Of a DNA stretch of 64,000 nucleotides, positions 1,176-59,970 are shown piece by piece. The notes below the pieces were generated by a model, which did no database searches, had not been told where the DNA came from, and saw only the letters and a list, made by a program, of their open reading frames with translations. Within the stretch, counting starts at the first letter, position 1, and each line of letters begins with the position of its first letter. The stretch is from IMG/VR virus record IMGVR_UViG_3300033145_003233, positions 372,001 to 436,000 of that record. One strand, 5' to 3'. A program made the position numbers and the translations under genes.

Positions 1176-1910
1176 TCATACCCCTTTATAAACGTTCTTC
1201 ACATATTTAGACAATATAAGATACGCCATAGTTAAGTTATCGGAATTAAAAACAAAATCTTCATACTTATAAGACGGTGACACTCTTAATAAATGACATG
1301 GAATAGTTGGCCTCACCAAATCCTCTGATATAAATTTACCAATCATTTCCATCTCTTCTTCTATCTTATCGTCAGAAAAATATAATGGGATGCTAATCTC
1401 TATATGAGGATTGGCAAAACGAATAGCCCAGTTATTACAAGCTTGTCGTATTCTATCTTTAATTACATAATGCTTAACACCAGCAATAGAATAAAATGAT
1501 TCCTCAGATCCCTTCCAATCTATATTAATAGCATCAGCTACCAAACAAATATATCTCCATGGCCTTTCCTCGACATAAGCATTAGTCTTTATAATAAACT
1601 TAAGATCATTCTTATGACATTCTTCTCCTAGTTCTATCAAAAATTCATAATGAATGGTAGGTTCATTAAATGTCATGCAAATACTATCACAATCGCTCTG
1701 TTTAGCCATAGTAACCAGCTGTAAGGGATCATAATGAAAAGACTTAACCTGCAAATCTTGCTGACTAATCTGCCAATTTTCACAATTATGAACTATGAAG
1801 CCATTAGCAACATAATTTTCATATCCTGGGACATTAAAATTATATACCTTCTGCTTCTTTTTTAATCTTTTAATAGATTTTATTTTTTTATATTCTAAAT
1901 TATCATCCAT
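1176..1910 (-). CDS. Split intein C-part (42 aa) fused to C-terminal part of AmmeMemoRadiSam-type radical SAM enzyme
   Basis: VYNFNV...NYVANGFIVHN/C (intein blocks F/G) followed by CENWQISQ...TFNEPT...TNAY...DAINIDWKG. Confidence 0.9.
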   Translation of the reverse strand: MDDNLEYKKIKSIKRLKKKQKVYNFNVPGYENYVANGFIVHNCENWQISQQDLQVKSFHYDPLQLVTMAKQSDCDSICMTFNEPTIHYEFLIELGEECHKNDLKFIIKTNAYVEERPWRYICLVADAINIDWKGSEESFYSIAGVKHYVIKDRIRQACNNWAIRFANPHIEISIPLYFSDDKIEEEMEMIGKFISEDLVRPTIPCHLLRVSPSYKYEDFVFNSDNLTMAYLILSKYVKNVYKGV

Positions 1911-1963
1911 AATATCATTGCACTGTCTTTCTCAGAATTACATGACTCTTATCTCACTTAATT

Positions 1964-3025
1964 TTAAAATGGATTGATTCTTTTATATATATGATTCGAA
2001 AACTTTTTTAGCAACTCTTGCCTTTCATTATAAGAAAGATCTTTTGTCTTATTTAACCAATTTCTACCCTGACATAAGACAACTTTTCCACATCTAAATT
2101 TTATATCATAATATTCATATTCATGCCACGCCTGGCCATATTGACAAGTTATGGACCATCGTTCTGTGTCTAATATTTTTTCGGAGATCCGCAAAGGATT
2201 CCCAATAATCCTTCTTACATCATTTTCGGTAGAACCGACTATGATATAATTCAATTTTGAGGTATAAATAGAAAAATCTTTATGGGCTTTTTTGAAATTT
2301 TCTTCTTCCATTTTTCTTATTTCTCCTATCCTCTTCTTCGCTATCCCCTCCTTTTGTTTATATTTTGATATATCGGAATAACCACTTTTTATTATCTCAC
2401 CATTATTTATCCATGCCTCGAAACCATCATCCCATATAAGATATATCTTATTATTGTTTTTATCGTATTCATAACAAATCCCAACGTTATTGCTGTCTAC
2501 GACCAAGACTCTATTCTCATTTTTATCATACCAGCACTGCCACCCATCTGCCCATTTAACATAAATAAATTTACCATCTACAGTTTTTCTATGCTCGTAA
2601 CCATCAGAAATCTTATAATAAATTGGATTATTACTTTTATCATATTCCCATTCCCACTGCTTATATCCATCAGATTCTTTTTGATAAATTTTATTATTAT
2701 TTTTATCATATTCAGCCCATATCTCATACCCTTCTGGGGACTTCTGATAGATGCAATTTTTACGAGTATCATAATTTTTTATATACCCTATAGCAGAATT
2801 ATATGACCCCACACCTACACTCTTAGTTCCTATCTTCCCAGTATAGGGATTTATATTCCCTTTAGTGCTCCAATTATTATAAGGATTACCATCAGGATTT
2901 GACCTATAGTGAGGAGCTACATAAGTCCCATTTTTGCGATAATATCCCTTAACACTAACATCAGCCATAAGAAGAGAAGTAGCTAGAGACATCATAATAA
3001 CTATTAAAATTATTAACTTTTTCAT
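1964..3025 (-). CDS. Secreted/membrane-anchored hypothetical protein with YD-like repeats
   Basis: Signal-peptide-like MKKLIILIVIMMSLA (likely start 3025); VKGYYRKNGTYVAPHYRS domain; EYDKNNN repeats. Confidence 0.6.
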   Translation of the reverse strand: MKKLIILIVIMMSLATSLLMADVSVKGYYRKNGTYVAPHYRSNPDGNPYNNWSTKGNINPYTGKIGTKSVGVGSYNSAIGYIKNYDTRKNCIYQKSPEGYEIWAEYDKNNNKIYQKESDGYKQWEWEYDKSNNPIYYKISDGYEHRKTVDGKFIYVKWADGWQCWYDKNENRVLVVDSNNVGICYEYDKNNNKIYLIWDDGFEAWINNGEIIKSGYSDISKYKQKEGIAKKRIGEIRKMEEENFKKAHKDFSIYTSKLNYIIVGSTENDVRRIIGNPLRISEKILDTERWSITCQYGQAWHEYEYYDIKFRCGKVVLCQGRNWLNKTKDLSYNERQELLKKFSNHIYKRINPF

Positions 3026-3087
3026 TTTGCTGTTCCTTATCAATTTTTCCACAATATTATCTTAATCTTAATCTCAATCTCAACATT

Positions 3088-3116
3088 ATTATATATTAAA
3101 TTGCTTTCACTTTCAA
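3088..3116 (-). promoter_or_regulatory. sigma70-like promoter TTGAAA-GTGA-17bp-TATAAT
   Basis: TTGAAAGTGAAAGCAATTTAATATATAAT on minus strand upstream of the 3025 gene; one of 10 similar motifs. Confidence 0.7.
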
Positions 3117-3142
3117 GAATTTTTTCATATTTTCAAAAATAA

Positions 3143-3159
3143 AGGAGGATTTTCCTCCT
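3143..3159. promoter_or_regulatory. Perfect 7-bp inverted repeat, possible operator
   Basis: AGGAGGA-TTT-TCCTCCT between divergent genes. Confidence 0.4.
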
Positions 3160-3216
3160 AAACTCATAATTATATAGGTAGAAAAACATAACAAATATAT
3201 TTAATAGGAGATAAAT

Positions 3217-3465
3217 ATGAGATATTTTAGATTAGTATTAAGTGAAAAACGAGGAGAATATTACTTTGACAGTATCCACGAAAAATTCGTCCACGCACAA
3301 AACAGAAATAAAGCATACAAAAAAGCTCTAAAAATAGCTGCCACATTCTTTAAAAACTATAAAAATGCTCCAACAGGAATTCCTGATGAAGATACTATCT
3401 TTTGGTTTAATGGTGATTATGCAGCTATCTGGATAAACGATTTAAAAGAAATTGAAATGATCTAA
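3217..3465 (+). CDS. Hypothetical protein
   Basis: ORF with AGGAG Shine-Dalgarno. Confidence 0.65.
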   Translation: MRYFRLVLSEKRGEYYFDSIHEKFVHAQNRNKAYKKALKIAATFFKNYKNAPTGIPDEDTIFWFNGDYAAIWINDLKEIEMI

Positions 3466-3533
3466 ATTATGAAATTTCACAATCTTTTACGATATAATAA
3501 TGACAATATTATGTAATAAAATAGGAGTAAAAA

Positions 3534-3683
3534 ATGAAAGATTGTAAAACCATTAGGATAGATGTCCCAACAGAGCTTCATGAGCGACTAAAAAAAAGTG
3601 CAAAAAAAGACTATGGCAATATAACATCTGTCGTTAGGAATTTAATAGTTCAATACGTTAAAGAAAAAGAGAAAGAGGGATAA
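3534..3683 (+). CDS. Ribbon-helix-helix (CopG/Arc-like) protein, not in ORF track
   Basis: MKDCKTIRIDVPTELHERLKKSAKKDYGNITSVVRNLIVQYVKEKEKEG; AGGAG SD; TAATG overlap with next gene. Confidence 0.7.
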   Translation: MKDCKTIRIDVPTELHERLKKSAKKDYGNITSVVRNLIVQYVKEKEKEG

Positions 3684-4712
3684 TGGGAAAATTTATAAAT
3701 CTAACTGATAAAAAATTTGGGCAATTAACAGTACTATCTCAAGCAAAATATCATAATAAAAGAATCCAATGGAAATGCAAATGCTCCTGTGGAAATTATA
3801 TCAATATTTGCACAAAAGACTTAAATAACGGGAAAAGAATATGCTGTAAAAAATGTGGCAAAACAAACTGCCTTATATGTGGCAAAAGAACAAAAAATAA
3901 AAAGATATGCTCCAACAAATGTAAAATAAAATTTGATAAATTATCAAAAAATCCATTACCACCTTTCTATTCCTATAAACATGCTGCTGCATATCTTCAA
4001 AAAGATCAAAGAACTATTAGAAAATGGGAAAATATTTTATATAAAATAGATAAAAATCTTAAATCTGATTTTAATCTAATAAAATGGAAAAACTGCAAAA
4101 TATGCAGGGATAAAACCCCATCAGCAAAATGCAGAGTAGGATACTGCAAAAAATGCTCTGAAAAAGGACTGGGACGTAAGAATACAGCAAAAATACTTTC
4201 TAAAAAATATAAGGGAAAAGGTAATCCAAATTACGTTCATGGCAAAAAAATGGAACATAGCAGAGAAAGAAGCGTCATGCATGATAGATGGGCAAAAAAA
4301 AATATTAAAAATAAAACCAAATGTATGCATGTTGAGTGGAAGAACAGATAAATTACATGTTCACCATATCTTGTCTTTTTCTATATTTCCGAAATTAAGG
4401 TATAAAATATGGAATGGACTTATTATAAACAGGTTTTATCACATAGAACTTCATCGTCTTCAGTTAGATCTTTTGCTTCTACCCACCTTCTGCTCTTTGT
4501 CATCACTGGATGTTCAGGAGTTAATCTCAACTTTTCTCCTTCTACCTCAAGTTCAATCAATTCTTCAGCTTCCCTATCAACAACATGTCCGACATGAGCT
4601 AATACGAGTTGTGGGTCGCTACTCGAATTATCCCAAACAACTATCTCTTCTCCATCCTCAATTTGCTCAATCTTCTTTGTCCCAATTGGAGTCGAGATTA
4701 GAGTTCCAGTAG
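3683..4712 (+). pseudogene. HNH homing endonuclease, frameshifted at A9 run 4294-4302
   Basis: N-part with KFGQLTV..WKCKCSCG and Zn fingers; HNH core (LHVHHI..FPKLR...NG...H) lies in the next frame; removing one A fuses them. Confidence 0.7.
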
Positions 4713-4995
4713 GCAAACAAAAAACACATTTTAAACTACAACCATATCCACCTATAGAAAAAGTTTTTGTACCAGGGAGAAAATGTTTAAATGGTTTCTT
4801 CTCTATAGGATCTATAGATATGGAAGAAATGTGATGATATCCTGATGGGACTACCTCATCGTCCGCCGCTCTCCTCGCCAAACATTGACCCAACTGCCCA
4901 TTTTTTAACAAACAAGAATTAGGACATAATAGGCATTGCACCTTATCATCTTGCTTTTGAAAAAGCTTTAATGTGTCATTCTTGTTCCTGAACAT
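4423..4995 (-). CDS. AmmeMemoRadiSam radical SAM N-part fused to split intein N-part (98 aa, 4719-4426)
   Basis: VQCLLCPNSC...DPIEKKP..HFLPG...GCSLKCVF then CLPTGT (block A) ... TPEHP (block B); likely ATG at 4995. Confidence 0.9.
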   Translation of the reverse strand: MFRNKNDTLKLFQKQDDKVQCLLCPNSCLLKNGQLGQCLARRAADDEVVPSGYHHISSISIDPIEKKPFKHFLPGTKTFSIGGYGCSLKCVFCLPTGTLISTPIGTKKIEQIEDGEEIVVWDNSSSDPQLVLAHVGHVVDREAEELIELEVEGEKLRLTPEHPVMTKSRRWVEAKDLTEDDEVLCDKTCL

Positions 4996-7341: not shown

Positions 7342-7893
7342 TTACCATTGCCCTATTATACCACATTGACAATCACTTTCAAATTGTTTTTTTCTACTAT
7401 TTTCTTCGATATATAATACGGCATTTTTTAACAAAGGAAGGGGATCTCTAAATTTGCCCCCCAAACCTCTTTCGATCATTCCCAACACGCTATTACATTT
7501 ACGGCAAAGTAATCCTCTGGGATGCCCATTTTTATGATTATGATCTAAACATAATTTATTTTTAAATTCTAATTCATGAACTTCACAAATAGCACATTTA
7601 CCTTGCTGTTTTTTATATATTTCTTCATAACCGCCAATAGTTATGCTGATTTTGCGTTTTTTCCAAACAGACATCCTGCTTTTTAGAGGGTTTTTCTCTC
7701 TATATCTCTTACTTCTTAATTTCCTCTTCTCCTTATCCTCGGCATCTGGATTGTCTTTCCTATATTTCTTAATTCTTTTCAGTATTGCTTCTTTATTTTC
7801 TTTGTAATATTTTTTACTATATTCTTTAAAATACTCTTTCTTTCTTAAACGATATTCTTTATCATATTTTTTCTTGGCTTCTTTAGAGATCAT
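7342..7893 (-). CDS. Endonuclease VII-type homing endonuclease
   Basis: QQGKCAIC...LCLDHNH..G..RGLLC..CN. Confidence 0.85.
   Translation of the reverse strand: MISKEAKKKYDKEYRLRKKEYFKEYSKKYYKENKEAILKRIKKYRKDNPDAEDKEKRKLRSKRYREKNPLKSRMSVWKKRKISITIGGYEEIYKKQQGKCAICEVHELEFKNKLCLDHNHKNGHPRGLLCRKCNSVLGMIERGLGGKFRDPLPLLKNAVLYIEENSRKKQFESDCQCGIIGQW
7355..7382 (-). promoter_or_regulatory. sigma70-like promoter TTGAAA-GTGA-16bp-TATAAT
   Basis: TTGAAAGTGATTGTCAATGTGGTATAAT upstream of the kdsC-like gene. Confidence 0.65.
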
Positions 7894-23019: not shown

Positions 23020-23380
23020 TTTCCTCCTCCTCATGGGATTGAGACCGAATATTATTTATCATTTCGTTAATAGGATACTGATCTAAATTAGCAATCATTT
23101 CATTCGCACCTTCTCCAGTAAGGCCTCCATTTTTATTCCTACTAACATGGTCAGAAGACGAGTCTATTTCGATAAAAAGATTTTTTTCCTTATTAATCAT
23201 ATTCCCACAAAAATCATCTACTATTTCCTGAGGGACATCTGGGGCTATTCCCCAGTCAGTTCCCTTAATGGCAAAAGTGACCATATCATTTTTCTCCAAA
23301 TCTTTTACCTTCATCTTAAAAAGATTATTATCTCTATCATATTCCATATCTAAAATTTTAACTTTAACTGGCTTATTCAT
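23009..23380 (-). CDS. Hypothetical protein
   Basis: Packed ORF. Confidence 0.65.
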   Translation of the reverse strand: MNKPVKVKILDMEYDRDNNLFKMKVKDLEKNDMVTFAIKGTDWGIAPDVPQEIVDDFCGNMINKEKNLFIEIDSSSDHVSRNKNGGLTGEGANEMIANLDQYPINEMINNIRSQSHEEEENVD

Positions 23381-24227
23381 TTTTTATTTCTCTCAAATAT
23401 TTTTCAATTGCTATGTCCCAGGTTTTTGTCTGTATAACCTCTGTTCCATTTTTTAGAGCCGGTTCTAAAAAATGACCGCATAATCGACATAATTTCTTGA
23501 ATTTATCTTTTACATTGCATGAGGAAATATCCTCTATAGTTTTTTCTCCCAGCCCCAAACCGAATATATTATCAATAACATTAGATGGAGTGCAAGGATA
23601 ATATAATCCATTTACAGATTTAGACAAACCACAATCTTGAGTTATCCAGCATCCCTTATCAAAATCTTTGTAACCTTTAAAACTGTTTAAATCTATTGGA
23701 GCAACCCTAGAAAGCCAAAACAAGTCAAACTTCTTTTCAAAAGTTTGATCTACCGAATCTATCTTGCCCAACCAAGGAGGAATACGATTTATTATATCCC
23801 TAATTTTTCCCCCACAACCATTTGTAGAAAGAATAAACATACATTTTTTATAAAATTTCCTATACTTATTTAAAATTTCTATCACTTTAAAAAAAGAAGG
23901 ATGAAGAGTTGGCTCTCCACCAACTAATTTTATACTTTTCCATTTGTGATCTAATCGTATAGATTCTTCTACAAATTCCTCCATATCCTCTAATGAAAGA
24001 TATTTATCTGTTTGGAATACATCCATACAAGCATTACAATTACCACATTTCAAATTACAATAATCTGTTAATTTAAGTTCTATCTTGTTTTTATTTGTCT
24101 GCCATGTTTTTTTGTCTTCCATCTCATAGCATTTAATAAATAATTTTGATAGAAATCTTTTATTCTTATTAAATTTATAAGTTTTCATATTTTGATCTAT
24201 TTTTATGATGTTTCTCCAATGCCTCAT
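23373..24227 (-). CDS. Radical SAM protein
   Basis: CNLKCGNC, GGEPTLHP, STNG, YYPC, C..C. Confidence 0.9.
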   Translation of the reverse strand: MRHWRNIIKIDQNMKTYKFNKNKRFLSKLFIKCYEMEDKKTWQTNKNKIELKLTDYCNLKCGNCNACMDVFQTDKYLSLEDMEEFVEESIRLDHKWKSIKLVGGEPTLHPSFFKVIEILNKYRKFYKKCMFILSTNGCGGKIRDIINRIPPWLGKIDSVDQTFEKKFDLFWLSRVAPIDLNSFKGYKDFDKGCWITQDCGLSKSVNGLYYPCTPSNVIDNIFGLGLGEKTIEDISSCNVKDKFKKLCRLCGHFLEPALKNGTEVIQTKTWDIAIEKYLREIKNE

Positions 24228-25007
24228 CCCAGGTTATAGAATTAATATCAAGAACCCCTCCAGGACTATATTTTGTCCCTCTATGAATATTGGGAACTAA
24301 AAACTTCCCACAATAACAACATATTTTTTCCAGCTTGCTCCCGATATCCGCCTCAAACATATCCTTAATATGCTTCTCCCCTATACCCACTTCAAATATT
24401 TTATCTATAAAAGCCGCCACTGGACAAGGGTAGTACATCCCATCAACGAACATCCTTCCCCCACATTTTTGCATCCTTTATTGAATTCTCCATATTCGTT
24501 AAAACATTTTAAATCTACCGGAGCCACCCTAAAAAGAGAAAACTGAGACACTTTATAATCCATCCCTCGACCAGTCGAGTCATCTATACCCACCCAGGAA
24601 GGAAGTTTAGCAATTATTTCCAGAACTTCTTCTCCCCATCCGTTAGTTCTAAGCAAAATTCGATCATCATTAAAATCTTTATACTTTTTCAATATATCAA
24701 TAACATCAAAAAAAAGGGGATGAAGAGTTGGCTCTCCACCAGTAATAGATACTCTTCTCATTCTAACATTTAAATCTATTAAGTCTTTTACAAATTTTTC
24801 CACATTCTCTAATGAAACATATTTATTCGATTCAACAATATCGCAACCCACATTGCACTGAACACATTTTAAATTACAATAATCAGTTAATTGAATTTCT
24901 ATTTGATCTTTACGCATTTTATAAGCTATAATATTTCTATTATTAACATAAAAAGTATCAAGAATCTTTATTATAAAATTAGTATCTTCTTTTTTTATTT
25001 TATACAT
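24175..25007 (-). pseudogene. Radical SAM protein, frameshifted near 24465-24475
   Basis: CNLKCVQC and GGEPTLHP in 24405-25007; YYPC and CCYCG in 24175-24474; paralogs are contiguous. Confidence 0.75.
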
Positions 25008-25818
25008 TTTTTTTAGAATATTCTTTTAACGCCCTGTCCCAACTTTCTGATTGTAATTCTAAAGTACTATAAAACAAACCTGGCTCAAAAAAGAAACCAC
25101 AATACTGACATACCTTTTTTAGCTTATTTCTTATATTACTATTTAAAAGATCTGCAAAGCTATCCTCTTCTATCTCTATCTCAAAAATCCGAGCTATAAC
25201 TTCCCCTAGAGAACACGGATAATATTTTCCCCACACAGACATATTTAACCCACATTGTCCTACTACTCTACATCCTTTATCAAACTCTTCATAACCTTTA
25301 AAAGAATCTATATCAACAGGAGCAATTCGAAAAAGTTCAAATCGAGCAAGTTTACCTTCTACCCCTCCCCTCTGCTCCCCTGTAGTATTTAATATCTCCA
25401 TCCATTCAGGAATTTTTTCCATTACTTTTTGAACCTTATTCCCCCATCCATTAGTTTTAATCTCAAATTTACAATCAGAATAAAATTGCCTATATTTACC
25501 TAAAATTTCTATTATTTCCGAAAAAAAGGGATGAAGAGTTGGCTCTCCACCCACCAATACTATATGATTCCATTTATACTCTGATGCTATAGATTCTTTT
25601 ACAAATTTCTCCATATTTTCTAATGAAAGATAATCATTTGTCTGAACTACATCATGACCAGCATTGCAATTACTACACTGCCGATTACAATAATTAGTTA
25701 ATTTGAGTTCTATAGCTTTTTTTCTTATCCCCCATTTTTTTTTATCTTCAAGCTTATAAGTCTCCTTAATCATCCTTAAAACTAAATCTTTTTTATTATT
25801 TAGATCTTCTACACGCAT
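25000..25818 (-). CDS. Radical SAM protein
   Basis: CNRQCSNC, GGEPTLHP, YYPC. Confidence 0.9.
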   Translation of the reverse strand: MRVEDLNNKKDLVLRMIKETYKLEDKKKWGIRKKAIELKLTNYCNRQCSNCNAGHDVVQTNDYLSLENMEKFVKESIASEYKWNHIVLVGGEPTLHPFFSEIIEILGKYRQFYSDCKFEIKTNGWGNKVQKVMEKIPEWMEILNTTGEQRGGVEGKLARFELFRIAPVDIDSFKGYEEFDKGCRVVGQCGLNMSVWGKYYPCSLGEVIARIFEIEIEEDSFADLLNSNIRNKLKKVCQYCGFFFEPGLFYSTLELQSESWDRALKEYSKKNV

Positions 25819-33015: not shown

Positions 33016-34998
33016 TCAAAACAAATCCTCAAACATATCCACTGATTCTATTTTCTTTTTCGTTGTTTTTTTACGATCTCTCCTGATCATCAAAAAATCT
33101 TCCATCATTTCTTCCTTACGATCTATTTGCTTTTTCCCGAAAAATCCCGCTTCGATTAAAGCCTCCACCGCTCTAGTATCTACAATAGAAGAATCAGTTT
33201 TATTCACTATATCCCTCATGCCGCTATAAGGCTGATTGTCCTCTATATGCTTAGCCGTATTTGCTCTCATTCCCTTACATAACAAACTAGGTCTTATCTC
33301 TGTCTTTTTTATCCCGTTTTTTTCATCTTTTCTTTTTTCTATAACATATTGAACCTTCGATTTATTTATGTCTCTAGGAAGGAATTTGATATTCATTTTC
33401 CTTTTAAACTCTTTCTCAAAAGCATCTATTTTATCATATCTGTTTCCCTGAGAACCATTAATAGTCACATCTAACAAAGAGCAAATAAATTCATCAGGAT
33501 AATTAGCTTTCAAAAATGCCGTAGTATAAGAGTTGTATCCATAACAGGCACTATGAGCTAAATTAAATCCATACGAAGCAAATGGAGTAATAAATTTAGT
33601 CCAGTATTGTTGAGCTACATCCCTTGGAACCTTATTATCTATACATCCATCAACAAACTGTTTTTCAAACTTAGCCATAAGATATTCTTTTTTCTTTCCA
33701 ATGGCCTTAATCATTACATAACCATCTGTAATAGTAAAACCAGCTAAGTTGCTACATATCTGCATCACTTGTTCTTGAAAACACAAAACCCCATAAGTCT
33801 TTTTTAGATAAGACTTTACAAAAGGCTCAATTGACTTGTGGAAATAAGTTACTTCTTTTTCTCCGCTCTTCCTATCACAATATTCTGGAATACTATCCAT
33901 TGGACCAGGACGATAAAGAGCCAAACCAGCAACAATATCTTCAAAACTATCAACACCTATACTTCTCATGGTATGTTGCATACCATAATTCTCACATTGA
34001 AAAACTCCACCCAAATTACCATCTCTATATAATTTAAAAGCTCCCGCGTCATCAATAGGGAGATTCTCCAAATCAATTTCTATCCCCCAATAATCTTTTA
34101 TTTTTTCTACTGTTTTCTTAATTACCGTCAAAGTGGCAATAGCTAGAACATCAAATTTAATCAACCCCAAAACTTCTAAATCTTCATTAGGAAATTGGGT
34201 TGCCAGCACCCCCTTCTTAGCATTTCTTAATGGAGCTATTTCATTTAAAGGAATATTAGAAACAACCACGCCAGCCGCATGAAAACCGAAATTAGCGAAT
34301 GTGCCTTCGATCACCTCCATATACTCTTTTATACCTGTATCTTCGTACTTATCTATATAATGTCTAAAATCTGGACAATGCTCATAAGCATCATCGAAGG
34401 TTTTAATAAGATGACTATTCCCCCCTTCATCTTTAACTTTAAGCAAGCCATATTTCGGAAATGGTGATAAAATTTCAGAAGCCTTAGCAGCATTTTCGCT
34501 TATATAGGAATCTTTTCCTTTATGAAAAGCATCTGCGATATCTAGTGCTTTAACCACCCTAGTAACACATGATTTAAATTTTAATAAACCATGAGTACCT
34601 ATATTCCCAACATTCTCTCTGCCGTACTTATTTATAATATAACTATATACACCATCCCTATTCTCATAATCAAAATCAGTATCTATATCAGGCAAGCCAG
34701 CTCTAGCAAAAGCACGTCTGGTGGGGAGGAAATCTCCCGATGGCTTAGTTTTAGTCATACCAAGAAAATAGGCCGTCCAGCTATTAATATCATTCCTATT
34801 ACCAGCTTTTTTATCATGATTTTTCCATATATTGTAAAAAACTTCCAAATTATTCCTAGATTCCAGCCCCTCTGTAGTTTCCATTAATTCCATTTCTCGC
34901 TTTGCTTTTGAAAGAATTTTGGATAAATCAGAATGATCAGCGTATTTTCTCTCCACCGCCTCTATGATTTCTAACTTAATTACCCTCAATTCTGCCAT
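33016..34998 (-). CDS. dnaE: DNA polymerase III alpha subunit, C-terminal (catalytic) part
   Basis: PDIDTDF, HAAGVV, KFDVL, GVFQ.E, YRPGPM, FQEQVM, YGFN..HS. Confidence 0.93.
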   Translation of the reverse strand: MAELRVIKLEIIEAVERKYADHSDLSKILSKAKREMELMETTEGLESRNNLEVFYNIWKNHDKKAGNRNDINSWTAYFLGMTKTKPSGDFLPTRRAFARAGLPDIDTDFDYENRDGVYSYIINKYGRENVGNIGTHGLLKFKSCVTRVVKALDIADAFHKGKDSYISENAAKASEILSPFPKYGLLKVKDEGGNSHLIKTFDDAYEHCPDFRHYIDKYEDTGIKEYMEVIEGTFANFGFHAAGVVVSNIPLNEIAPLRNAKKGVLATQFPNEDLEVLGLIKFDVLAIATLTVIKKTVEKIKDYWGIEIDLENLPIDDAGAFKLYRDGNLGGVFQCENYGMQHTMRSIGVDSFEDIVAGLALYRPGPMDSIPEYCDRKSGEKEVTYFHKSIEPFVKSYLKKTYGVLCFQEQVMQICSNLAGFTITDGYVMIKAIGKKKEYLMAKFEKQFVDGCIDNKVPRDVAQQYWTKFITPFASYGFNLAHSACYGYNSYTTAFLKANYPDEFICSLLDVTINGSQGNRYDKIDAFEKEFKRKMNIKFLPRDINKSKVQYVIEKRKDEKNGIKKTEIRPSLLCKGMRANTAKHIEDNQPYSGMRDIVNKTDSSIVDTRAVEALIEAGFFGKKQIDRKEEMMEDFLMIRRDRKKTTKKKIESVDMFEDLF

Positions 34999-35022
34999 AT
35001 AAATCTCCCCTACGTCAGCTAT

Positions 35023-35051
35023 AGAATATCCGATTCCCTTTCACTTTTCAA
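35023..35051 (-). promoter_or_regulatory. sigma70-like promoter upstream of dnaE C-part
   Basis: TTGAAA AGTGAAAGGGAATCGGA TATTCT. Confidence 0.6.
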
Positions 35052-35264
35052 CTATAAATCTAAAATTTCGAATCTCAACCCAATATCTGAAACGATATCT
35101 CCATATCCCCTAATAGAAATAGGAGGTTGAAATCTTTTTTCTTTCAACTCGGATACGCTAATAGTGGGAGTAACAAACAATGGAGTATAAGGGACATATA
35201 TATATGCCTCCCCTAGAATATCTCCTCCTTTAAAACCAAGCCGGATTTGACTAGCTGTAGCCAA
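35052..35264 (-). CDS. Small protein resembling the C-terminal segment of T4 gp23-type major capsid protein, with RFEILDL tag
   Basis: LGFKG....AYIYVPYTPL..TP....FQP...R.YG versus gp23 VGYKG...AG.YY.PY..L.....FQP....RYG. Confidence 0.55.
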   Translation of the reverse strand: MATASQIRLGFKGGDILGEAYIYVPYTPLFVTPTISVSELKEKRFQPPISIRGYGDIVSDIGLRFEILDL

Positions 35265-35282
35265 TGTTTTACTCCCCCTCTT

Positions 35283-35513
35283 TTATAAATCCAAAATTTC
35301 AAACCTACTTTCTATAGGTTCCCATTCCCACATTATTGATGACCCATAAGGGACAATTATAGAACCAAGAGTTGTTCTTAACCTCATATATTCCAGCATC
35401 ACATCATGGGGAATCTCTCCCCTCCCATAATATTTTATCATCTCTTGAGTTCTCTCGTCCTCAAAAAATTCAACTTTCCCATTAATAGATATCTTAATAT
35501 CTGTCAACGCCAC
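35283..35513 (-). CDS. Hypothetical protein with RFEILDL tag
   Basis: Ends PIESRFEILDL-stop. Confidence 0.6.
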   Translation of the reverse strand: MALTDIKISINGKVEFFEDERTQEMIKYYGRGEIPHDVMLEYMRLRTTLGSIIVPYGSSIMWEWEPIESRFEILDL

Positions 35514-35826
35514 CTAAGTCATCCTCTAATTCATGCTCATGCGAATCATCATTTAAGTCAGAAAAATCCATAGCTCGAACAATATTCCCGATATGGTTAG
35601 CCAGTACAGGGTTTTCTGCCTGCATTTCCTCTATCGTATATCTATCTTTCATCCACCGATTCTCCATTTTTTTATCATCGAAAAAAACATACATACCCTT
35701 CCTAAATTCTGATTTATCGCCAAATTTAGTGTACACTAAGATTCCCCCATCCTTAATTTCTTCACGACTCACTATCTCTGTCACTCCTCTTGACCCATCA
35801 TCAAATTCATATCCTATATACAACAT
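35494..35826 (-). CDS. Hypothetical protein sharing C-terminal ELEDDLGGVDRY with DnaE N-part
   Basis: AGGAG SD; identical last 12 aa. Confidence 0.7.
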   Translation of the reverse strand: MLYIGYEFDDGSRGVTEIVSREEIKDGGILVYTKFGDKSEFRKGMYVFFDDKKMENRWMKDRYTIEEMQAENPVLANHIGNIVRAMDFSDLNDDSHEHELEDDLGGVDRY

Positions 35827-35858
35827 TCTATTCTCCTAACTTTTATTAATATTATCTT

Positions 35859-36896
35859 TCAATTTTTTATATGCTTCTTTAATTCCCAAATTGCTCTCTT
35901 ATATCTCGGCATAAATGTCTCATATTTACAATCCCCAGGTTTAACAGTCCTTAAAGTTATTCCAAGTTCTTTACATTTTTTACGCTTTCTCTTATCTCTA
36001 TCTTTTTGTTGCTTTAGCTTACTTTCTCCATGAATAGGTTTATAATGAAAGTTCCCACTAACCTCTACTGCATAATTTATATCAGGGAAATAAAAATCTA
36101 GCTCTAAAGGAGCAACAACTGTTCTATTATTTCTATCATATTTTACATTCAGTTTTTTAACCAATTTTTCAAACTGAGTCTCTACAAATGATTCTTTAAA
36201 TTTATACTTAGCGAAACATCTAATAGAACAAAAATGATGCTGATTCCTTTTAACATAAATAGGGGATTTAAAAACATTTTTATCGCATCCGTCACATTTT
36301 ACCCGAATTTTATTATTCTGAAATTCATTACAACACTTTTTTGAGCAAAATATATTATCCTTCCCCCTTAAAATGCTAGGAGATCTATATAAAATCTTAT
36401 CACAATTTTTACAATATACTCTCATTCTTTTATTATTATTGTCACTCCTGCATTTGATCGAGCAACAGTGAGTGAGGCTTCTTTTTCGTTCTGCTGAATT
36501 TTTATAAAAGTTTTTCCCACATACCTCACAGGCTACACTATTAATCCTTTGATAATAACTGGACTTACACTGCATATTACAAAAATATATATCTGTTTTA
36601 TTATCATCCCTCTCTCTCTTACATCTGTAAATAGATTTATGACAATTAGAACATCTTACTTCATTTTTTTCTATTTTATGCTTCGACAAACATATTTTAT
36701 TACAATAATGATGCTTAGACTTTTCTAAATATTTTTTTCCTCTCCTATTTTTTTTACCACAATAATCACAGTCTATTATTTTCGATCCCTTAATATCATT
36801 AGCACAATTCCTGGAACAACAATTTGTTTTACTTTTTAATATATGTGACAATTTTTTATAGAATTCTTTACCACAATAATCACAGTCTATAAGCAT
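35859..36896 (-). CDS. Homing endonuclease with Zn-finger (CxxC..FCS..C) repeats and Vsr/DUF559-like nuclease
   Basis: Six C..C.K.....(F/Y)C...C repeats; ELDFYFP..YAVE..G.FH. Confidence 0.75.
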   Translation of the reverse strand: MLIDCDYCGKEFYKKLSHILKSKTNCCSRNCANDIKGSKIIDCDYCGKKNRRGKKYLEKSKHHYCNKICLSKHKIEKNEVRCSNCHKSIYRCKRERDDNKTDIYFCNMQCKSSYYQRINSVACEVCGKNFYKNSAERKRSLTHCCSIKCRSDNNNKRMRVYCKNCDKILYRSPSILRGKDNIFCSKKCCNEFQNNKIRVKCDGCDKNVFKSPIYVKRNQHHFCSIRCFAKYKFKESFVETQFEKLVKKLNVKYDRNNRTVVAPLELDFYFPDINYAVEVSGNFHYKPIHGESKLKQQKDRDKRKRKKCKELGITLRTVKPGDCKYETFMPRYKRAIWELKKHIKN

Positions 36897-36978
36897 ATTT
36901 CTTATCTCCTATTGAAAAATAAATGTTCTCAACTATTATTAAATACAATTTAATAGGAGATAATCCCTCTTTTATTTT

Positions 36979-38391
36979 TTAATAACGGTCTACTCCCCCA
37001 AGATCATCTTCTAATTCTCTATCTACATCTCCTTTATCGGCGGCTTGTTGAATAAGGTTTTCCTCAAAGCCAAAATCTGACTCTTTTATAAACTTGAGCG
37101 AATCAAACCCAAGGAATCTCTCCCACAACAACCCATGTTCTATAGGGTCAATCCCATATGTAATCCCCAAACACCTCAACAAGACACTCGCATAACCCGA
37201 TCCACGCCCACAACCAACTAATATACCTCGTTCTTTGGCATCCTGGATATAATCTCGAACAATCAAAAAATAAGTCGAAAAATCATAATTATTACTTTCC
37301 TGTGCTACCAAAACATCTTTTAATTCCAGTTCTAATCTTTCAACATGTTTTTTACTATTATTCCATCCTACAGTCTTCATGCCTTCCCATGCAAGACGAC
37401 ACAAATATTCATAAGCATTTTTATATTCAGATGGAATTTCAAATTTGGGCAACCTCATTCCCCCAAATAAATTTTCTTCTATGTTCTTGGTATCTATTCG
37501 TTCAGCCAGCATAACAGAATTAGATAAACAATTAGAAGTGTTATTAAATATCTTCGCCATTTCTTCTGCACTTTTAAGATAGAACTCCATATGACTAAAA
37601 CTCAACCTGTCTGGATCTTTAACGCAACGTTGTTGTGACATGCACATTAAAACTTCTTGAGATTGGCCTTCTTTTCCAATTATATAGTGCCCATCATTCG
37701 TGCAAACTACAGGAATATTTAATTCAGAGGATAGTTTAAAAATTAAGGGGATAATCGCTTTCTCTTCCCTGATACCGTGGTACATTACTTCTAAAAAGAA
37801 ATTCTTATTAAATATCTCATTAAAAGTCCCGCATATCTTCTTTGCTCTATCATAGTTGCCATATACCAAATTGATATTAATAACACTTGATAAACAAGCA
37901 GAGCTACACATCACTCCCTCAGAATGCTTAGCCAGCAAATCTATATCAACTCTTGGATCAAAATAAAAACCATCAGTATATGACTTCTGAGACATACGAC
38001 ATATATTCTGATAACCCTTAAAATTCATAGCATATAAGTTGATATGCCTGTTTCCCCTTCTCCCATCAGGTTGGTTCTTTTTAGTTTTTTTAGTATCTTT
38101 TTTTTCATCGTATTGCCCTATATCCATTTTTCTAGAAAGATACATCTCACACCCAAGTATGGGTTTGATAGGAGCATAGGGAATACTATTGCCTTTTTTA
38201 TCTTTTGTGATACGACAATGTTGAAGGAATTTAATCCATCCCATAACAGACCCATGATCTGTTAGGGCAATAGCAGGAAACCCCATTTGCCTAGCTTTCA
38301 AAACAAGCTTATCAATTTTCGCGAGACCATCAAATTGGCTATACTCAGAATGTACGTGCCAATGAACAAAATCTTTATTTTCAAATTTCAT
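36979..38391 (-). CDS. dnaE: DNA polymerase III alpha subunit, N-terminal (PHP) part
   Basis: HVHSEYS..DG, TDHG, TNDGHY, YFLIV.D, GRGSG, LLWERFL. Confidence 0.93.
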   Translation of the reverse strand: MKFENKDFVHWHVHSEYSQFDGLAKIDKLVLKARQMGFPAIALTDHGSVMGWIKFLQHCRITKDKKGNSIPYAPIKPILGCEMYLSRKMDIGQYDEKKDTKKTKKNQPDGRRGNRHINLYAMNFKGYQNICRMSQKSYTDGFYFDPRVDIDLLAKHSEGVMCSSACLSSVININLVYGNYDRAKKICGTFNEIFNKNFFLEVMYHGIREEKAIIPLIFKLSSELNIPVVCTNDGHYIIGKEGQSQEVLMCMSQQRCVKDPDRLSFSHMEFYLKSAEEMAKIFNNTSNCLSNSVMLAERIDTKNIEENLFGGMRLPKFEIPSEYKNAYEYLCRLAWEGMKTVGWNNSKKHVERLELELKDVLVAQESNNYDFSTYFLIVRDYIQDAKERGILVGCGRGSGYASVLLRCLGITYGIDPIEHGLLWERFLGFDSLKFIKESDFGFEENLIQQAADKGDVDRELEDDLGGVDRY

Positions 38392-54213: not shown

Positions 54214-55533
54214 TTATACTCTTATAAGGAATTTCCAATCACTTTCCAATCTTTTTATAGATTTTTCTTTATCTTCGTCATATTTTATCCTATGTAGTAT
54301 AATATTATTTTCTTTACAAAATTGAGTGTCCAACTTGTCCTTCAAACGATATTTTTTAAGATTTTTATTAGCCCTATATAAAGAAAACCTTCCATAAGTA
54401 ATAGGCTTAAAATGTTGCTCTCCGTCATATTCCACTATTATATTAGTAGAATCCTTTTCCAACCAGAAATCACAATACCTTCTATGCTTATAGTCTTTAT
54501 ATTCATCCCATATTTTTTTATTTGGGATAATATTCCAATCTTCGAAATATTTTAATAAAAGTTCCCTTACCTTACCCTCATTCTTTTTGTAGCAAAAAGG
54601 ACACCCCTGCCCCTTAACTCGATTAGATACGGAGCTTTCCCACTCATGACTCTCATTTTTAGAACAAATCCACCAAACTTTTCTATCTGACCCATAAGAC
54701 ACCTCCTTAGCAGTTAATTGACCATTCTTAGTGGGATGCCATTCTTTTGCTAATTCTGGATATTTAAGTTTCAAACAATTTTTTTTAGAAACCCTTTTAC
54801 CTCCACAATATGGACAATTATCCCCTCTAGCCCTATGATTAACAATTGTCATCCACTCATGTCTCTTATTGCATTTCCACCACACCTTTTTATTACAACC
54901 TCCCGTAATATCTTTAGCAGTTAATTTACCGTTCTTAGTAGGATGCCATTCTTTAGCTATTTCTGGGTATTTAGTTTCTAAACAATTATCCTTACAAGCT
55001 TTACTCCCCGAACAATATGGACAATTTCTCCCATTTGACCTATTATTAACAGTAGCCTCCCATTCATGTCCCTTACCACATTTCCACCACACTTTTTTAT
55101 TACTTTGTGGCATCACATCCTCAGGAGTTAAATTTTTATTTTTGATAAAATGCCATTCCTTAGATAATATAGAATTCTTAACAGACAAACAAGTTAGTGA
55201 AGTCGTTCCAGATAATTTTTCTCTATAACAATATAAACAATTACAACCATTTTTTCTATTATTTATAACTGCCTCCCATTCATGCCCCTTACCACATTTC
55301 CACCAAACCTTTTTCCCACTGCCTGCTGTCAACTCTTTTGGACTTAACCCTCTCCTATCATTTTTCTCATAATTCCATTCTTTCATTAACTTTTTGTGAG
55401 TCTGATATAATGACTTTTTATCATTTCCTCCTCTACGATAATAATGAAAATAAAAACATTTTTTCGAGCAATAGTTCTTCTGTTGCTTTACCAACCCTTT
55501 CCCACAATTCAAACATTCTTTATTCTTTCCCAT
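54214..55533 (-). CDS. Homing endonuclease with DUF4379-like zinc-ribbon repeats and Vsr/DUF559-like nuclease
   Basis: EWH..KN...KVWWKC..GHEW...R..G..CPYC x4; CDFWL..IVEYDGEQH. Confidence 0.82.
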   Translation of the reverse strand: MGKNKECLNCGKGLVKQQKNYCSKKCFYFHYYRRGGNDKKSLYQTHKKLMKEWNYEKNDRRGLSPKELTAGSGKKVWWKCGKGHEWEAVINNRKNGCNCLYCYREKLSGTTSLTCLSVKNSILSKEWHFIKNKNLTPEDVMPQSNKKVWWKCGKGHEWEATVNNRSNGRNCPYCSGSKACKDNCLETKYPEIAKEWHPTKNGKLTAKDITGGCNKKVWWKCNKRHEWMTIVNHRARGDNCPYCGGKRVSKKNCLKLKYPELAKEWHPTKNGQLTAKEVSYGSDRKVWWICSKNESHEWESSVSNRVKGQGCPFCYKKNEGKVRELLLKYFEDWNIIPNKKIWDEYKDYKHRRYCDFWLEKDSTNIIVEYDGEQHFKPITYGRFSLYRANKNLKKYRLKDKLDTQFCKENNIILHRIKYDEDKEKSIKRLESDWKFLIRV

Positions 55534-55866: not shown

Positions 55867-56037
55867 ATGGCCAAAAAAGAAAAAACAGATAAGATAATCA
55901 ATTTTGCAATTAAACAATCTCTCTATGATAAATTTAAAAAGATATGCGATCAACGCTATAAGAGTCTGAGCGAGCAGATTAGAGAATTGATAGTGGAAAA
56001 AGTAAATAGGGAAGATAACATTAAAGAATCTAAGTAG
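55867..56037 (+). CDS. RHH-like regulator, not in ORF track
   Basis: AAGGAG SD; INFAIKQSLYDKFKKIC..RYKSLSEQIRELI, similar to the 10581 and 13635 RHHs. Confidence 0.7.
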   Translation: MAKKEKTDKIINFAIKQSLYDKFKKICDQRYKSLSEQIRELIVEKVNREDNIKESK

Positions 56038-56088
56038 ATTGATCGATACCTAATTATAGATCAAAGTTTAATTAAAAAGGAAAAAATA

Positions 56089-56487
56089 ATGCATGAAATT
56101 ATAATAGCAGTCTTGCTAACGATAATCTCCGGATTAACTGTTAAAATATATGGAGACTATGCCTCTAATGCTAAAATAGCAAAAATACAAAAGAAAAAGA
56201 CAAAAAAATACTACAAAGAATTAGAAGACGATATCCCCTGTGCCTTAAAATATATAAAAAAATGCGTACAAGAAAAGAATAGTGTAAGTTGCATATTTGT
56301 CCCTACCACTTTTGGTAAATTTGAGGATAAAGAATATAATAACCAAAAAATTACAAAAAATCCCCTAATTGAAGAAGAGATTATAGAATCATTACAAAGT
56401 AAACAATTTATTTCTATGTCCCTTAATTCTGATGAAACTTATATATATAAAGAAGAGTTTATAGATTTATTAAAAAAGAATTTATAA
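56089..56487 (+). CDS. Membrane-anchored hypothetical protein
   Basis: N-terminal hydrophobic segment. Confidence 0.6.
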   Translation: MHEIIIAVLLTIISGLTVKIYGDYASNAKIAKIQKKKTKKYYKELEDDIPCALKYIKKCVQEKNSVSCIFVPTTFGKFEDKEYNNQKITKNPLIEEEIIESLQSKQFISMSLNSDETYIYKEEFIDLLKKNL

Positions 56488-56538
56488 TCACTTTCTTCTT
56501 AAAAATATAAATATTAGAATAACACTAAGGAAAATAAA

Positions 56539-57327
56539 ATACAAAAGTACAAATATATTTGCCCGATATGTGAAGAAACTGGTAATGAATCCAAAAGAGC
56601 GCATGTTCTCCCTGAAAGTTTAGGATTTACTAAAATTGTCGAAGTAGTTAAAAAAAAAGAATGCAAATGTGATCATATTATGGGGAGTACTTGCGAAAAA
56701 GCTTTAAGAGATTGTTATATCTATAATTATCATAATTACAAAGGAGATAAAAAAACTAATACAGACGATCTATCTGAAGTAAATAAATTAGACTGGAAAA
56801 TAGATACTAAAAAAGATAAAAAAATGAATGCAAAATTTATAGAAAGAAATGGAAACATCGAAATAAAACCATGCCCCTCTGGAGGTTGGGACAAATTTAA
56901 ACAACAATCAAAACACCTATTAAAGATAACCCAGGTAAACACAGTGAAAGCAAAAGCAGAAATAGAAAAAGATGCATATAAAATTTATTTTTGCCTTATT
57001 CATTCTTTGCTTTTAATGAATCTTGACAAAAAAATTCTTGATGATAAAATTAGGAATAATCTCAGAGAGACATTAAAAAGGAACTGTAAGAATAAATTTA
57101 ATGATTTTAGAAATAGACAGGCCACTTGGGAATATCAAAAAGAAAAAGAAATACAACATATTAGTTTTTGTAATCAAATAGGAACAGGGAGGATCATATA
57201 TGCTAAAACCAAAATGATAGGATTTGGGTGTGGAATCCAATTAAATAATTATTGTTATGCCTATACGGTTGATGTCCTAAATTGGACCGTAGAAAAAATA
57301 AAGAAAAAAATCAGAAGACGTTTCTAA
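56539..57327 (+). CDS. HNH-like endonuclease domain protein, start uncertain (ATA at 56539 or ATG at 56680)
   Basis: In-frame upstream CPIC...HVLPESLG...CKC precedes the annotated ATG. Confidence 0.5.
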   Translation: MQKYKYICPICEETGNESKRAHVLPESLGFTKIVEVVKKKECKCDHIMGSTCEKALRDCYIYNYHNYKGDKKTNTDDLSEVNKLDWKIDTKKDKKMNAKFIERNGNIEIKPCPSGGWDKFKQQSKHLLKITQVNTVKAKAEIEKDAYKIYFCLIHSLLLMNLDKKILDDKIRNNLRETLKRNCKNKFNDFRNRQATWEYQKEKEIQHISFCNQIGTGRIIYAKTKMIGFGCGIQLNNYCYAYTVDVLNWTVEKIKKKIRRRF

Positions 57328-57426
57328 TCTAATTAATCTATTATAACGGCACATCTACTCAATTGTAAATTTTTATTTTCCAGACAATTGTTTTTTTGAT
57401 ATAATAGAATAAAAAGGAGATTAAAA

Positions 57427-57933
57427 ATGAAAAGAATGTTAGTAGTTATAATTATCTTATTAATAATTATTGCTGGTTTGTTAATAGACAACTTTTACCC
57501 TGATATCAGAATAGAGATACAAGATGGAATTTATGCCTCCAAAACGTCCAATAAAATTATAAAAGAAGCTAATGAATGTATATCTCTGTGTAATAAATGC
57601 GGAGAAAAATTAACTCGTTGTGGCCCCATCAGTATATATGCTGCTCTTGATTATACAATTCGAGGTTCTTTTTGTGCTATCTGTAATAAATGTCTATCTG
57701 GTATTAAAGATATTAACTTAGAGAATATTATAAATTCGGGAATAGGAAAAATTTTAACTTATCCTTCTAATGTATATATACCTGATAATAAATTCTGGAA
57801 CATATGGGGAGAAGTTTATATAAGATCAAGAGATGCAAATAAAAATAAAGAATTATTGGTAGAAATAGGCTTTTATGATAAATTCGATGAAAAAGCTCTT
57901 CGCAATTTTAATATTTTCACTGGACAAATCTAA
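57427..57933 (+). CDS. Membrane-anchored/secreted hypothetical protein
   Basis: AGGAG SD, N-terminal TM helix, CxxC pairs. Confidence 0.65.
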   Translation: MKRMLVVIIILLIIIAGLLIDNFYPDIRIEIQDGIYASKTSNKIIKEANECISLCNKCGEKLTRCGPISIYAALDYTIRGSFCAICNKCLSGIKDINLENIINSGIGKILTYPSNVYIPDNKFWNIWGEVYIRSRDANKNKELLVEIGFYDKFDEKALRNFNIFTGQI

Positions 57934-58008
57934 TTCATTTTCAAATGTTTTTTTTAATTACTTAATAATCAAGATATATCTACTCCATCCTAAATTTTTA
58001 TTTCCTTC

Positions 58009-58036
58009 TTGAAAGTGAAAATATAAATGTTAAAAT
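58009..58036 (+). promoter_or_regulatory. sigma70-like promoter
   Basis: TTGAAA GTGAAAATATAAATGT TAAAAT. Confidence 0.55.
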
Positions 58037-58361
58037 GGCATCTATGTTTAAAATCGAAGAAGAAATTCAACTAACAAAAAATGGAGATTTTTTACAAAGT
58101 TCTAAAGAACTTAGAGAATACTACACCCCTAGAACTATAGGCTATCATAAATATTGCGATTCAAATCGATCAAAAGATTCTTTCATGTATTTACACAGAA
58201 CATCAAAACAAAAAAATACCATCTTTTGTAAAAAATGTAATTTTAGAATTGAGATACCCCTAAAAGTAAATAATTTCAAAAAAATAAAAAAATATTTTGA
58301 AAATAGATTTGATGATCCAATTGATAGAATCCAAGACAGATCAGAAATTTTAGATTTATGA
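58035..58361 (+). CDS. Hypothetical protein with RSEILDL tag
   Basis: Ends IQDRSEILDL-stop. Confidence 0.65.
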   Translation: MASMFKIEEEIQLTKNGDFLQSSKELREYYTPRTIGYHKYCDSNRSKDSFMYLHRTSKQKNTIFCKKCNFRIEIPLKVNNFKKIKKYFENRFDDPIDRIQDRSEILDL

Positions 58362-58864
58362 TGAAACTCGAAAAAGATTTTATACAATGTTGTGCAGAAT
58401 TTTTATTCAAAATAGCTGATTTTGAAGACTATGATGATAAACACTATATTAGTATGGGCCACGGGGATGGAGAACACCTTTGTTTTAAGTGTTGTGAAAA
58501 AGAAGTCGAAAAAATTAATAAAGAATTGCCCGAGAATGAAGAAAAAGCTTTTGTAGATGGAGGATGGAATGGTGCGGGTATTGACGGAAATGATGAAGGA
58601 CCTGATTCCTGTGATATATGCTATAAAAAATTAGATTATTCTTTATCTGAAAGTGGAGTTATACAAGAATGTAAATTTTTCTTAGAGGAAGACTTAGTAG
58701 AAATAACTCCGAATAATGCTGCTGAACTATATTATCTTTTCGACAATAGTGATAATTATGATTTTCAAGGTAATGACTTAAATAAATTGACAAAATTAGC
58801 CAATAAAATTTGGCGTCTTTTAGATCAAACAATTGAGAGTAGGTTTGAGATTTTAGATTTATGA
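58358..58864 (+). CDS. Hypothetical Cys-containing protein with RFEILDL tag
   Basis: Ends IESRFEILDL-stop. Confidence 0.7.
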   Translation: MMKLEKDFIQCCAEFLFKIADFEDYDDKHYISMGHGDGEHLCFKCCEKEVEKINKELPENEEKAFVDGGWNGAGIDGNDEGPDSCDICYKKLDYSLSESGVIQECKFFLEEDLVEITPNNAAELYYLFDNSDNYDFQGNDLNKLTKLANKIWRLLDQTIESRFEILDL

Positions 58865-59181: not shown

Positions 59182-59184
59182 ATA

Positions 59185-59931: not shown

Positions 59932-59970
59932 ATTAGTTAGTGGCAGAAGTTATTGTGATAATAGGGGTGA

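Follow-up and report, generated by a model that had tools for sequence, protein, structure and literature searches.

A predicted split-intein element in a phage radical-SAM gene, with an HNH endonuclease gene antisense to the intein N-half

Background

How can a gene still specify an iron-sulfur enzyme when it is broken inside the very motif that binds the cluster, with other genes lying in the break? This question is raised by a gene for a radical S-adenosylmethionine (rSAM) enzyme in the IMG/VR virus record IMGVR_UViG_3300033145_003233, of which we analyzed positions 372,001 to 436,000 (64,000 nucleotides, here called the window, to whose numbering the coordinates below refer). A sequence-only reading of the window had proposed that the two gene pieces are rejoined as proteins by a naturally split intein, which would rebuild the C-x3-C-x2-C motif with the first residue of the C-terminal extein (the +1 Cys) as the third cluster ligand. 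The comparative analysis reported here supports this proposal and extends it. The locus is most probably a composite selfish element in an rSAM gene of a huge phage, inserted after the x2 residues and directly before the third Cys of the motif, which would combine trans-splicing with a mobility module on the opposite strand. Loci and proteins of relatives are designated below by L and P numbers, respectively.

Results

Two gene halves and a predicted splice junction

The N-terminal half of the gene is an open reading frame (ORF) at 4995..4423 on the minus strand, which encodes 190 amino acids (aa), namely a 92-aa N-extein and a 98-aa N-terminal intein fragment (IntN), followed by a stop codon. 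Its start at 4995 agrees with the N-termini of relatives, and a ribosome-binding site, AGGGAAAGAG, lies upstream. The C-terminal half, at 1910..1176 on the same strand, encodes 244 aa: a 42-aa C-terminal intein fragment (IntC), the sequence CENWQISQ (with the +1 Cys codon at 1784..1782), and 194 further residues. The predicted spliced product has 294 aa with the junction ..GCSLKCVF-CENWQISQ.., and only in this spliced sequence is the C-x3-C-x2-C motif of the host protein complete. Both ORFs are exactly as the sequence-only reading had described them, including the GCSLKCVF end, the lengths of the two intein fragments and the C-ENWQISQ start.

On the NCBIfam hidden Markov model (HMM) TIGR04337, the N-half matches profile positions 7-86 (E 4.7e-26) and the C-half positions 84-282 (E 1.6e-21), so the two exteins abut in the profile. 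Intein profiles, which had been suggested as a check of the split-intein proposal, scored above their cut-offs on the respective halves (intein_Nterm, TIGR01445, 29.2 bits with a cut-off of 24.5; intein_Cterm, TIGR01443, 32.6 bits with a cut-off of 15.6), and the Pfam family Intein_splicing (PF14890) matched the C-half with 36.6 bits against a cut-off of 35.8. The acidic character claimed for IntN and the basic character claimed for IntC were borne out by computed net charges of -13 (pI 4.4) and +5 (pI 9.7), respectively. Block B of IntN (TxxH) reads LTPEHP. A stop codon follows IntN, a start codon precedes IntC, and the two pieces lie in one locus in the same orientation with the break at the canonical split site, features of the fractured genes of Dassa et al. 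(2009).

Relatives of the split intein

A search of 5.8 billion proteins for homologues of the two halves returned about 20 C-halves and about 30 N-halves. The C-halves (232-258 aa, IntC plus extein) come from independent assemblies and have a common start point. The complete N-halves have 164-211 aa; all N-halves stop within about 20 residues past the sequence ..DDEVLCD, about half of them with the exact ..DKTCL end. In relatives, N-halves share their contigs with C-halves, and the flanking genes are conserved (DUF1257, peptide deformylase, N-half, gap, C-half, glycosyltransferases). Intein-less alleles, for which a search among relatives had been suggested, were found as proteins of 274-290 aa that read C-x3-C-x2-CEN..SQ across the junction. 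In addition, the 416-aa protein P0020 is a natural contiguous mini-intein allele without a break at the split point. The split coincides with the canonical site of endonuclease insertion. No variation was seen across the lineage in Cys1, TxxH, His-Asn or the +1 Cys (alignments including A1). Since dozens of independent assemblies have the same stop and start, and both the intein-less junction and a contiguous allele exist, the element is, on comparative evidence, a genuine naturally split class-1 intein, whose splicing is predicted and whose +1 Cys would become the third ligand of the cluster motif, as originally proposed.

The nearest solved chain is that of the NrdJ-1 split intein (8ubs, E 4e-7), with clear similarity over block B and the C-terminus of IntN. 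In an AlphaFold model of P0020 (predicted local distance difference test, pLDDT, 78.5) the insert matches many inteins with a root-mean-square deviation of 11-12 Å; because it superposes so poorly on solved inteins, the model adds little beyond the HMMs. Neither the locus nor the C-half had a match in DNA or protein among GenBank phages, and IntN matched only distant helicase inteins of Vibrio phages. A profile search with IntN over 1.8 billion proteins was dominated by multi-intein proteins and is for this reason not a clean census of hosts. Within the 547,943-bp genome, no second intein was found besides the one in the rSAM gene. One clade of N-halves (L008:6001-6570, L009:6001-6582) carries a 17-residue extension of IntN past ..DDEVLCDKTY, giving a total of 115 aa, together with a shorter IntC of 37-38 aa.

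An HNH gene antisense to IntN

The gap between the halves (4422..1911) measures 2,512 bp and contains four ORFs, in agreement with the separation of about 2.5 kb and four genes noted earlier. Three of them are on the opposite strand (an HNH-type gene, a 49-aa ribbon-helix-helix (RHH) gene and an 82-aa ORF) and one, of 362 aa, is on the same strand as the halves. The HNH endonuclease gene that the sequence-only reading had placed between the halves is present, but in the window it is read in two frames, and its 3' part continues antisense through the IntN coding region (Table 1). The two frames, 3683..4351 and 4239..4712, together match an intact 362-aa protein of L007, with identities of 60% for the first and 73% for the second. 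The extra A responsible for the shift may be a sequencing error.

The second frame contains the core LHVHH...WNG...YHIELH and then proceeds antisense through IntN, closing seven bases short of intein codon 1. The DNA for ..NRFYHIELHR.. of the HNH protein is the reverse complement of the DNA for ..EDDEVLCDKTCL of IntN plus its stop codon, and the last ~95 codons of the HNH gene (~290 nt) overlap IntN. Residues H171, H172, N188, H197 and H201, candidates for the HH..N..H beta-beta-alpha-metal motif, are invariant (alignment A3). Family matches were obtained to phrog_374 on the N-terminal part (E 1e-9) and to phrog_12434 on the core (E 0.009), with no match to a Pfam HNH family. The predicted structure of the HNH protein was unstable between AlphaFold models (72.7 versus ~55).

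The same arrangement is widespread. Nine phage AmrS-like loci examined have the antisense HNH gene, with the frame intact in seven, shifted in the window, and truncated in L008, where merely a 146-aa C-terminal remnant is left. The gene also lies over IntN in L004, L005, L010 and L028-L037, and the split alleles examined, three loci excepted, carry it on the opposite strand. It is frequently hidden by annotation. Uncalled antisense segments of the HNH family (265-369 aa) are present in L001, L002, L003, L006 and L009, and in the Nodosilinea, Rubrobacter, L005 and IMG/VR loci, whose gaps had seemed 'empty', members of this family stand in the same arrangement. The opposite holds for L101 and L102, where the HNH gene is called and the N-half missed, with overlaps of ~270-320 nt. 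Because of the opposite-strand overlap, callers annotate one of the two genes and never the pair (L101, L102 and L007 versus L001-L006). They missed the HNH gene of the Nodosilinea genome (L004:8365-9201) altogether.

We compared the numbers of stop codons in the HNH phase at seven loci with those expected from synonymous shuffles. Over IntN, 3 stops were observed against 36.6 expected. The same-phase controls had 40 against 37.4 in the N-exteins, 32 against 30.1 in IntC and 110 against 105.9 in the C-exteins, and the contiguous alleles showed no depletion (4 against 4.1 and 3 against 3.2). The fraction of identical residues encoded by the same codon is 0.87 in IntN, 0.68 in IntC and 0.47-0.49 in the exteins; within the HNH gene, the overlapping part gives 0.86 and the remainder 0.58, with the same direction in 28 of 28 pairs. 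The length of the tail and its invariant residues are kept among HNH proteins that are merely 38-43% identical.

A compositional by-product was once favored as the explanation of the open antisense frame, because the frame was also open in loci 'without HNH'. It was rejected, as those loci do hold an uncalled HNH gene, and the phase- and region-specific controls oppose it.

Distribution among rSAM families

The intein is sporadic in its distribution. In the C-extein tree, split and intein-less alleles interleave, the starred branches force at least nine changes of state, and several well-supported sister pairs differ in intein state. Identities to the window are 62-76% for IntN and 50-88% for IntC, and 36-52% for the N-exteins and 29-51% for the C-exteins. 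Both the interleaving and this contrast in identity speak for a mobile element. The lineage is not limited to this enzyme: at least four rSAM families, from phages, cyanobacteria and other bacteria, have it at the same site, after the x2 residues and directly before the third Cys. Among SPL-family proteins, the split form is found in Nodosilinea, Rubrobacter, Abditibacterium and Chthonomonadaceae genomes and the contiguous form in Abditibacterium and Aggregatilineales. The B12-binding rSAM proteins include a split (P0300) and a contiguous (P0332) representative. In addition, a 198-kb phage-like contig carries the lineage in an unclassified rSAM protein, and IMG/VR contigs have it in one more rSAM family.

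A Rv2578c-like rSAM gene (L026:1574-4535, also in L027; its protein P0301 occurs on 11 contigs) is in three pieces. The first consists of an N-extein and IntN; the second (139 aa) of an IntC, the 7-residue extein CPHKCSY and a second IntN; and the third of ~200 aa followed by an IntC and the C-extein. The +1 residues of the two split inteins are cluster cysteines 1 and 3. Of two other proteins of this family, P0194 combines a contiguous intein ahead of cluster Cys 1 with a split one at Cys 3, and P0314 carries the split one alone, so that there are two intein sites inside one 8-residue motif.

The host enzyme

The AmmeMemoRadiSam-type assignment made by the sequence-only reading stands as a best match and no further. 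The curated TIGR04337 cut-off of 220 bits is not reached by the halves (91.5 and 76.6 bits) or by the intein-less protein P0015 (164.6 bits), and the match ends at position 282 of the 349-position profile. In the 547,943-bp genome, no gene matched AMMECR1 (AmrA), Memo (AmrB), glycyl-radical proteins or NrdD; the Memo and AMMECR1 partners may be encoded by the host cell. Membership in the radical SAM superfamily, with its cluster motif and partial TIM-barrel fold, is well supported: relatives of the enzyme carry PF04055 (Radical_SAM), and the closest fold to the rSAM part of the P0020 model is that of the PFL-activating enzyme (3c8f, E 1e-8). In view of the sub-threshold scores and the lack of partner genes, we call the protein a putative AmrS-/PFL-activase-like rSAM enzyme and name no substrate.

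PF04055 has seven matches elsewhere in the genome, six of them above cut-off. Three neighboring rSAM genes with such matches (284, 200 and 272 aa) lie at 23373..25818 of the window on the minus strand.

The rest of the gap

The RHH gene is found at the same place in five relatives (L001, L002, L003, L006 and L102). The relatives examined, with 0.5-4.2 kb between their halves, have neither the 82-aa ORF nor the 362-aa cargo gene in the gap. In the window, a terminator-like hairpin and, after it, the region's best promoter-like site precede the cargo gene and the C-half (Table 1), which suggests that these two genes are transcribed separately from a predicted promoter inside the insert.

Relatives carry defence-type genes as cargo between the intein halves, namely a gene for a GmrSD_N protein in L002 (4120-5673) and Eco57I-like and N6-methyltransferase genes in L008 (6607-10691).

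Table 1. Features of the split rSAM locus in the window
Feature	Position	Strand	Basis
N-extein part of the rSAM gene, 92 aa, ending GCSLKCVF (cluster Cys 1 and 2)	4720..4995	-	ORFs and HMMs
IntN, 98 aa, CLPTGT...LTPEHP...DKTCL; Cys1 at 4719..4717, stop at 4425..4423	4426..4719	-	HMM and alignments
Dual-coded stretch: IntN on minus, HNH core helix and tail on plus	4426..4712	.	Overlap analyses
HNH homing-endonuclease gene (Zn-ribbon/NUMOD-like N part, HNH core, C-terminal tail)	3683..4712	+	phrog matches, homologues
A9 homopolymer holding a +1 frameshift (one extra A relative to L007)	4294..4302	+	Comparison with L007
49-aa RHH (Arc-like) gene	3534..3683	+	Stop TAA overlaps HNH ATG (TAATG, 3681..3685)
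Promoter-like site upstream of the RHH-HNH pair	3469..3498	+	Consensus match only
82-aa ORF without family match	3217..3465	+	Family searches
Terminator-like hairpin (3159..3143), then best promoter-like site of the region (3116..3088, 11/12)	3088..3159	-	Consensus matches
362-aa cargo gene, signal-peptide-like N-terminus, YDKNNN-type repeats	1964..3052	-	phrog_29674 (function not assigned), on the N-terminus only
IntC, 42 aa, blocks F and G ..VYNFNVPGYENYVANGFIVHN, ending FIVHN	1785..1910	-	HMM and alignments
C-extein part, 202 aa from the +1 Cys (CENWQISQ), plus stop	1176..1784	-	ORFs, HMMs, relatives

Discussion

Proposed mechanism

In the composite element that we favor, two proteins would be made, the 190-aa N-extein-IntN and the 244-aa IntC-C-extein. 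The acidic IntN and the basic IntC would associate into a single HINT domain and carry out class-1 trans-splicing, in which formation of a thioester at Cys1 would be followed by transfer to the +1 Cys, Asn cyclisation and an S-to-N shift. The predicted product is the 294-aa enzyme with the sequence GCSLKCVF-CENWQISQ at the junction, and only this spliced form would be able to bind a [4Fe-4S] cluster.

The mobility module would be the RHH-HNH cassette on the opposite strand, from which the HNH protein is presumed to support homing and which the RHH protein would repress. As the HNH frame opens in the gap and closes ~95 codons into IntN antisense, the endonuclease and the intein half would share DNA and travel together, with the tail of the HNH protein presumably translated and functional. 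In a broader proposal, the entire lineage would be a single dual-coded selfish element, formed by a split intein specialized on the universal rSAM cluster motif and an HNH gene partly overprinted antisense to IntN, the two being inseparable by recombination and hopping between unrelated rSAM families in phages and bacteria. The four clustered cysteines (-7, -3, 1 and +1) might in addition gate splicing by redox or Fe-S state. Our judgment of this broader proposal is evenly balanced.

Alternative explanations

Several observations weigh against the composite element. Block F of the intein has Asn and Glu where solved inteins have Asp and His. The Asp and His assist the acyl shifts and are not strictly required in all inteins. 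The Asn/Glu pair is moreover a trait of the whole lineage and extends to the contiguous alleles, which cannot work unless they splice. In the window the HNH gene carries a frameshift, so homing may be dead in this phage, and the promoter and terminator are consensus matches only. Regarding the overlap, shared descent of the loci makes the per-locus P values non-independent; a helical HNH tail is predicted at moderate confidence only (pLDDT ~50-80, shallow alignment); and the Pfam search gives the tail no family, no tail domain being known from elsewhere.

The unusual block F could mean that the intein halves no longer splice and serve as interaction domains that hold the enzyme fragments together, as is described for a fragmented phage NrdA (PMC3045599). 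We consider this very unlikely, because all nucleophiles, TxxH and the His-Asn pair are invariant over diverged relatives, about 140 intein residues would have to sit within the 8-residue cluster motif, and the contiguous alleles share block F yet must splice to work. That the rSAM gene is simply dead, broken by a mobile insertion and represented by decaying remnants, would accord with the frameshifted HNH gene and with the lack of an identified partner or substrate gene in the genome. It is nevertheless highly improbable, since over 20 diverged loci have both halves full-length and stop-free, with extein motifs and flanking genes conserved, and the profile matches span nearly the whole enzyme. 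Although the window locus is known as an assembly, an artefact in which 2.5 kb wrongly interrupts a contiguous intein (possibly one with an endonuclease domain) has in our view a minute probability: the same IntN stop and IntC start recur in ENA, Logan, JGI and NCBI assemblies, where gaps of 0.5 to 4.2 kb hold the same antisense HNH family. With respect to the overlap, a more serious competitor is that the HNH protein functionally ends after the core helix and the rest of the antisense frame is an untranslated, inherited or compositional by-product. The tail without a known family, its middling fold prediction, the shared ancestry of the loci and the conservation of IntN, which confounds amino-acid conservation of the tail, are all compatible with such a by-product. 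Against it, the stop depletion is confined to IntN and to one phase and is absent in contiguous alleles, synonymous change is lower in IntN than in the co-mobile IntC and in the non-overlapping part of the HNH gene, and HNH proteins of only 38-43% identity retain tails of equal length. On balance we regard the by-product as unlikely and retain an overlapping, translated HNH tail as part of the composite element.

Comparison with known systems

The closest known kind are the fractured genes of marine metagenomes (gp41-1, NrdJ-1, IMPDH-1 and NrdA-2; Dassa et al. 2009, PMC2677866). Their hosts (gp41, IMPDH, DnaE, NrdA, NrdJ, ligase and terminase) belong to replication or nucleotide metabolism, and their endonucleases are GIY-YIG or Vsr-like and co-oriented, with a same-strand overlap of 6-69 bp with the downstream gene; HNH endonucleases were merely predicted as possible in such genes (PMC2677866). 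The present locus resembles them in its two co-oriented pieces within one locus, canonical split site, free-standing endonuclease gene and occurrence in phages, and shares with NrdJ-1, IMPDH-1 and NrdA-2 an acidic IntN and a basic IntC. In contrast, the host here is an rSAM enzyme, and the endonuclease is of the HNH type, is preceded by an RHH gene, and is encoded on the opposite strand, with ~290 nt of IntN overlapped antisense. Full-text literature searches returned no paper on a split intein in an rSAM host, in line with the earlier expectation that such a case is probably undescribed, and no paper on an intein overlapped by an endonuclease gene of the other strand.

For contiguous inteins in rSAM enzymes, however, there are precedents. 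NCBIfam model NF038136 is a curated description of an intein-containing Rv2578c-family rSAM protein, and matches of the present lineage to it cross the C-x3-C-x2 junction. The contiguous intein of Pyrococcus abyssi MoaA is reported to have a Cys-3/Cys1 disulfide redox trap (Callahan 2011, cited in PMC3922620 and PMC10663303). In these cases, as here, the intein resides in an oxygen-labile Fe-S enzyme, whereas only the present one is split. Like MoaA, the N-extein here has a Cys at -3 (and also at -7). With the cyanobacterial DnaE inteins (Npu, Ssp) the locus shares the naturally split class-1 type, Cys1 and the +1 Cys, and electrostatic pairing of the halves. Unlike here, where the halves are 0.5-4.2 kb apart and the distribution is sporadic, the DnaE halves lie far apart in the genome, have no associated endonuclease gene and seem fixed in their lineage.

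Implications

With this locus, rSAM enzymes would join the hosts of natural split inteins, and since the splice nucleophile is itself a cluster ligand, enzyme activity would be strictly post-splicing. Among the relatives, nature supplies many kindred IntN/IntC pairs, all using Cys1 and a +1 Cys, as candidate ligation tools. An opposite-strand endonuclease gene overlapping the N-fragment of an intein would represent a mode of coupling that bears on the origin and persistence of split inteins. Such loci are systematically mis-annotated, as callers report one of the two overlapping genes.

Other features of the window

The source genome is a 547,943-bp record rated complete by CheckV. The window is AT-rich, with nearly all genes on the minus strand, and contains replication genes of phage type (helicases, a DnaB-like helicase, a UvsX-like recombinase and a DNA polymerase). 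The polymerase (phrog_405; 33016..38391, minus strand) is in two ORFs, 36979..38391 matching profile positions 40-435 and 33016..34998 matching positions 439-952, which are separated by an HNH endonuclease gene at 35859..36896 (phrog_559). No intein is involved, and this second broken gene of the window is of the intein-less kind known from Aeh1 nrdA and T4-like gene 43, which are split by a free-standing HNH gene (PMC2677866). As in those genes, an HNH gene breaks the phage rSAM gene into two ORFs; unlike the rSAM gene, they have no intein and their fragments assemble non-covalently.

Further nuclease genes on the minus strand encode an endonuclease VII-like protein (7342..7893, phrog_2914) and a 439-aa HNH endonuclease (54214..55533, phrog_559). 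The stretch 56000..60000 is the only one in the window with positive GC skew; its GC content is lower (0.27-0.29), it has plus-strand ORFs at 56089..58864, and it may be an inserted or inverted module.

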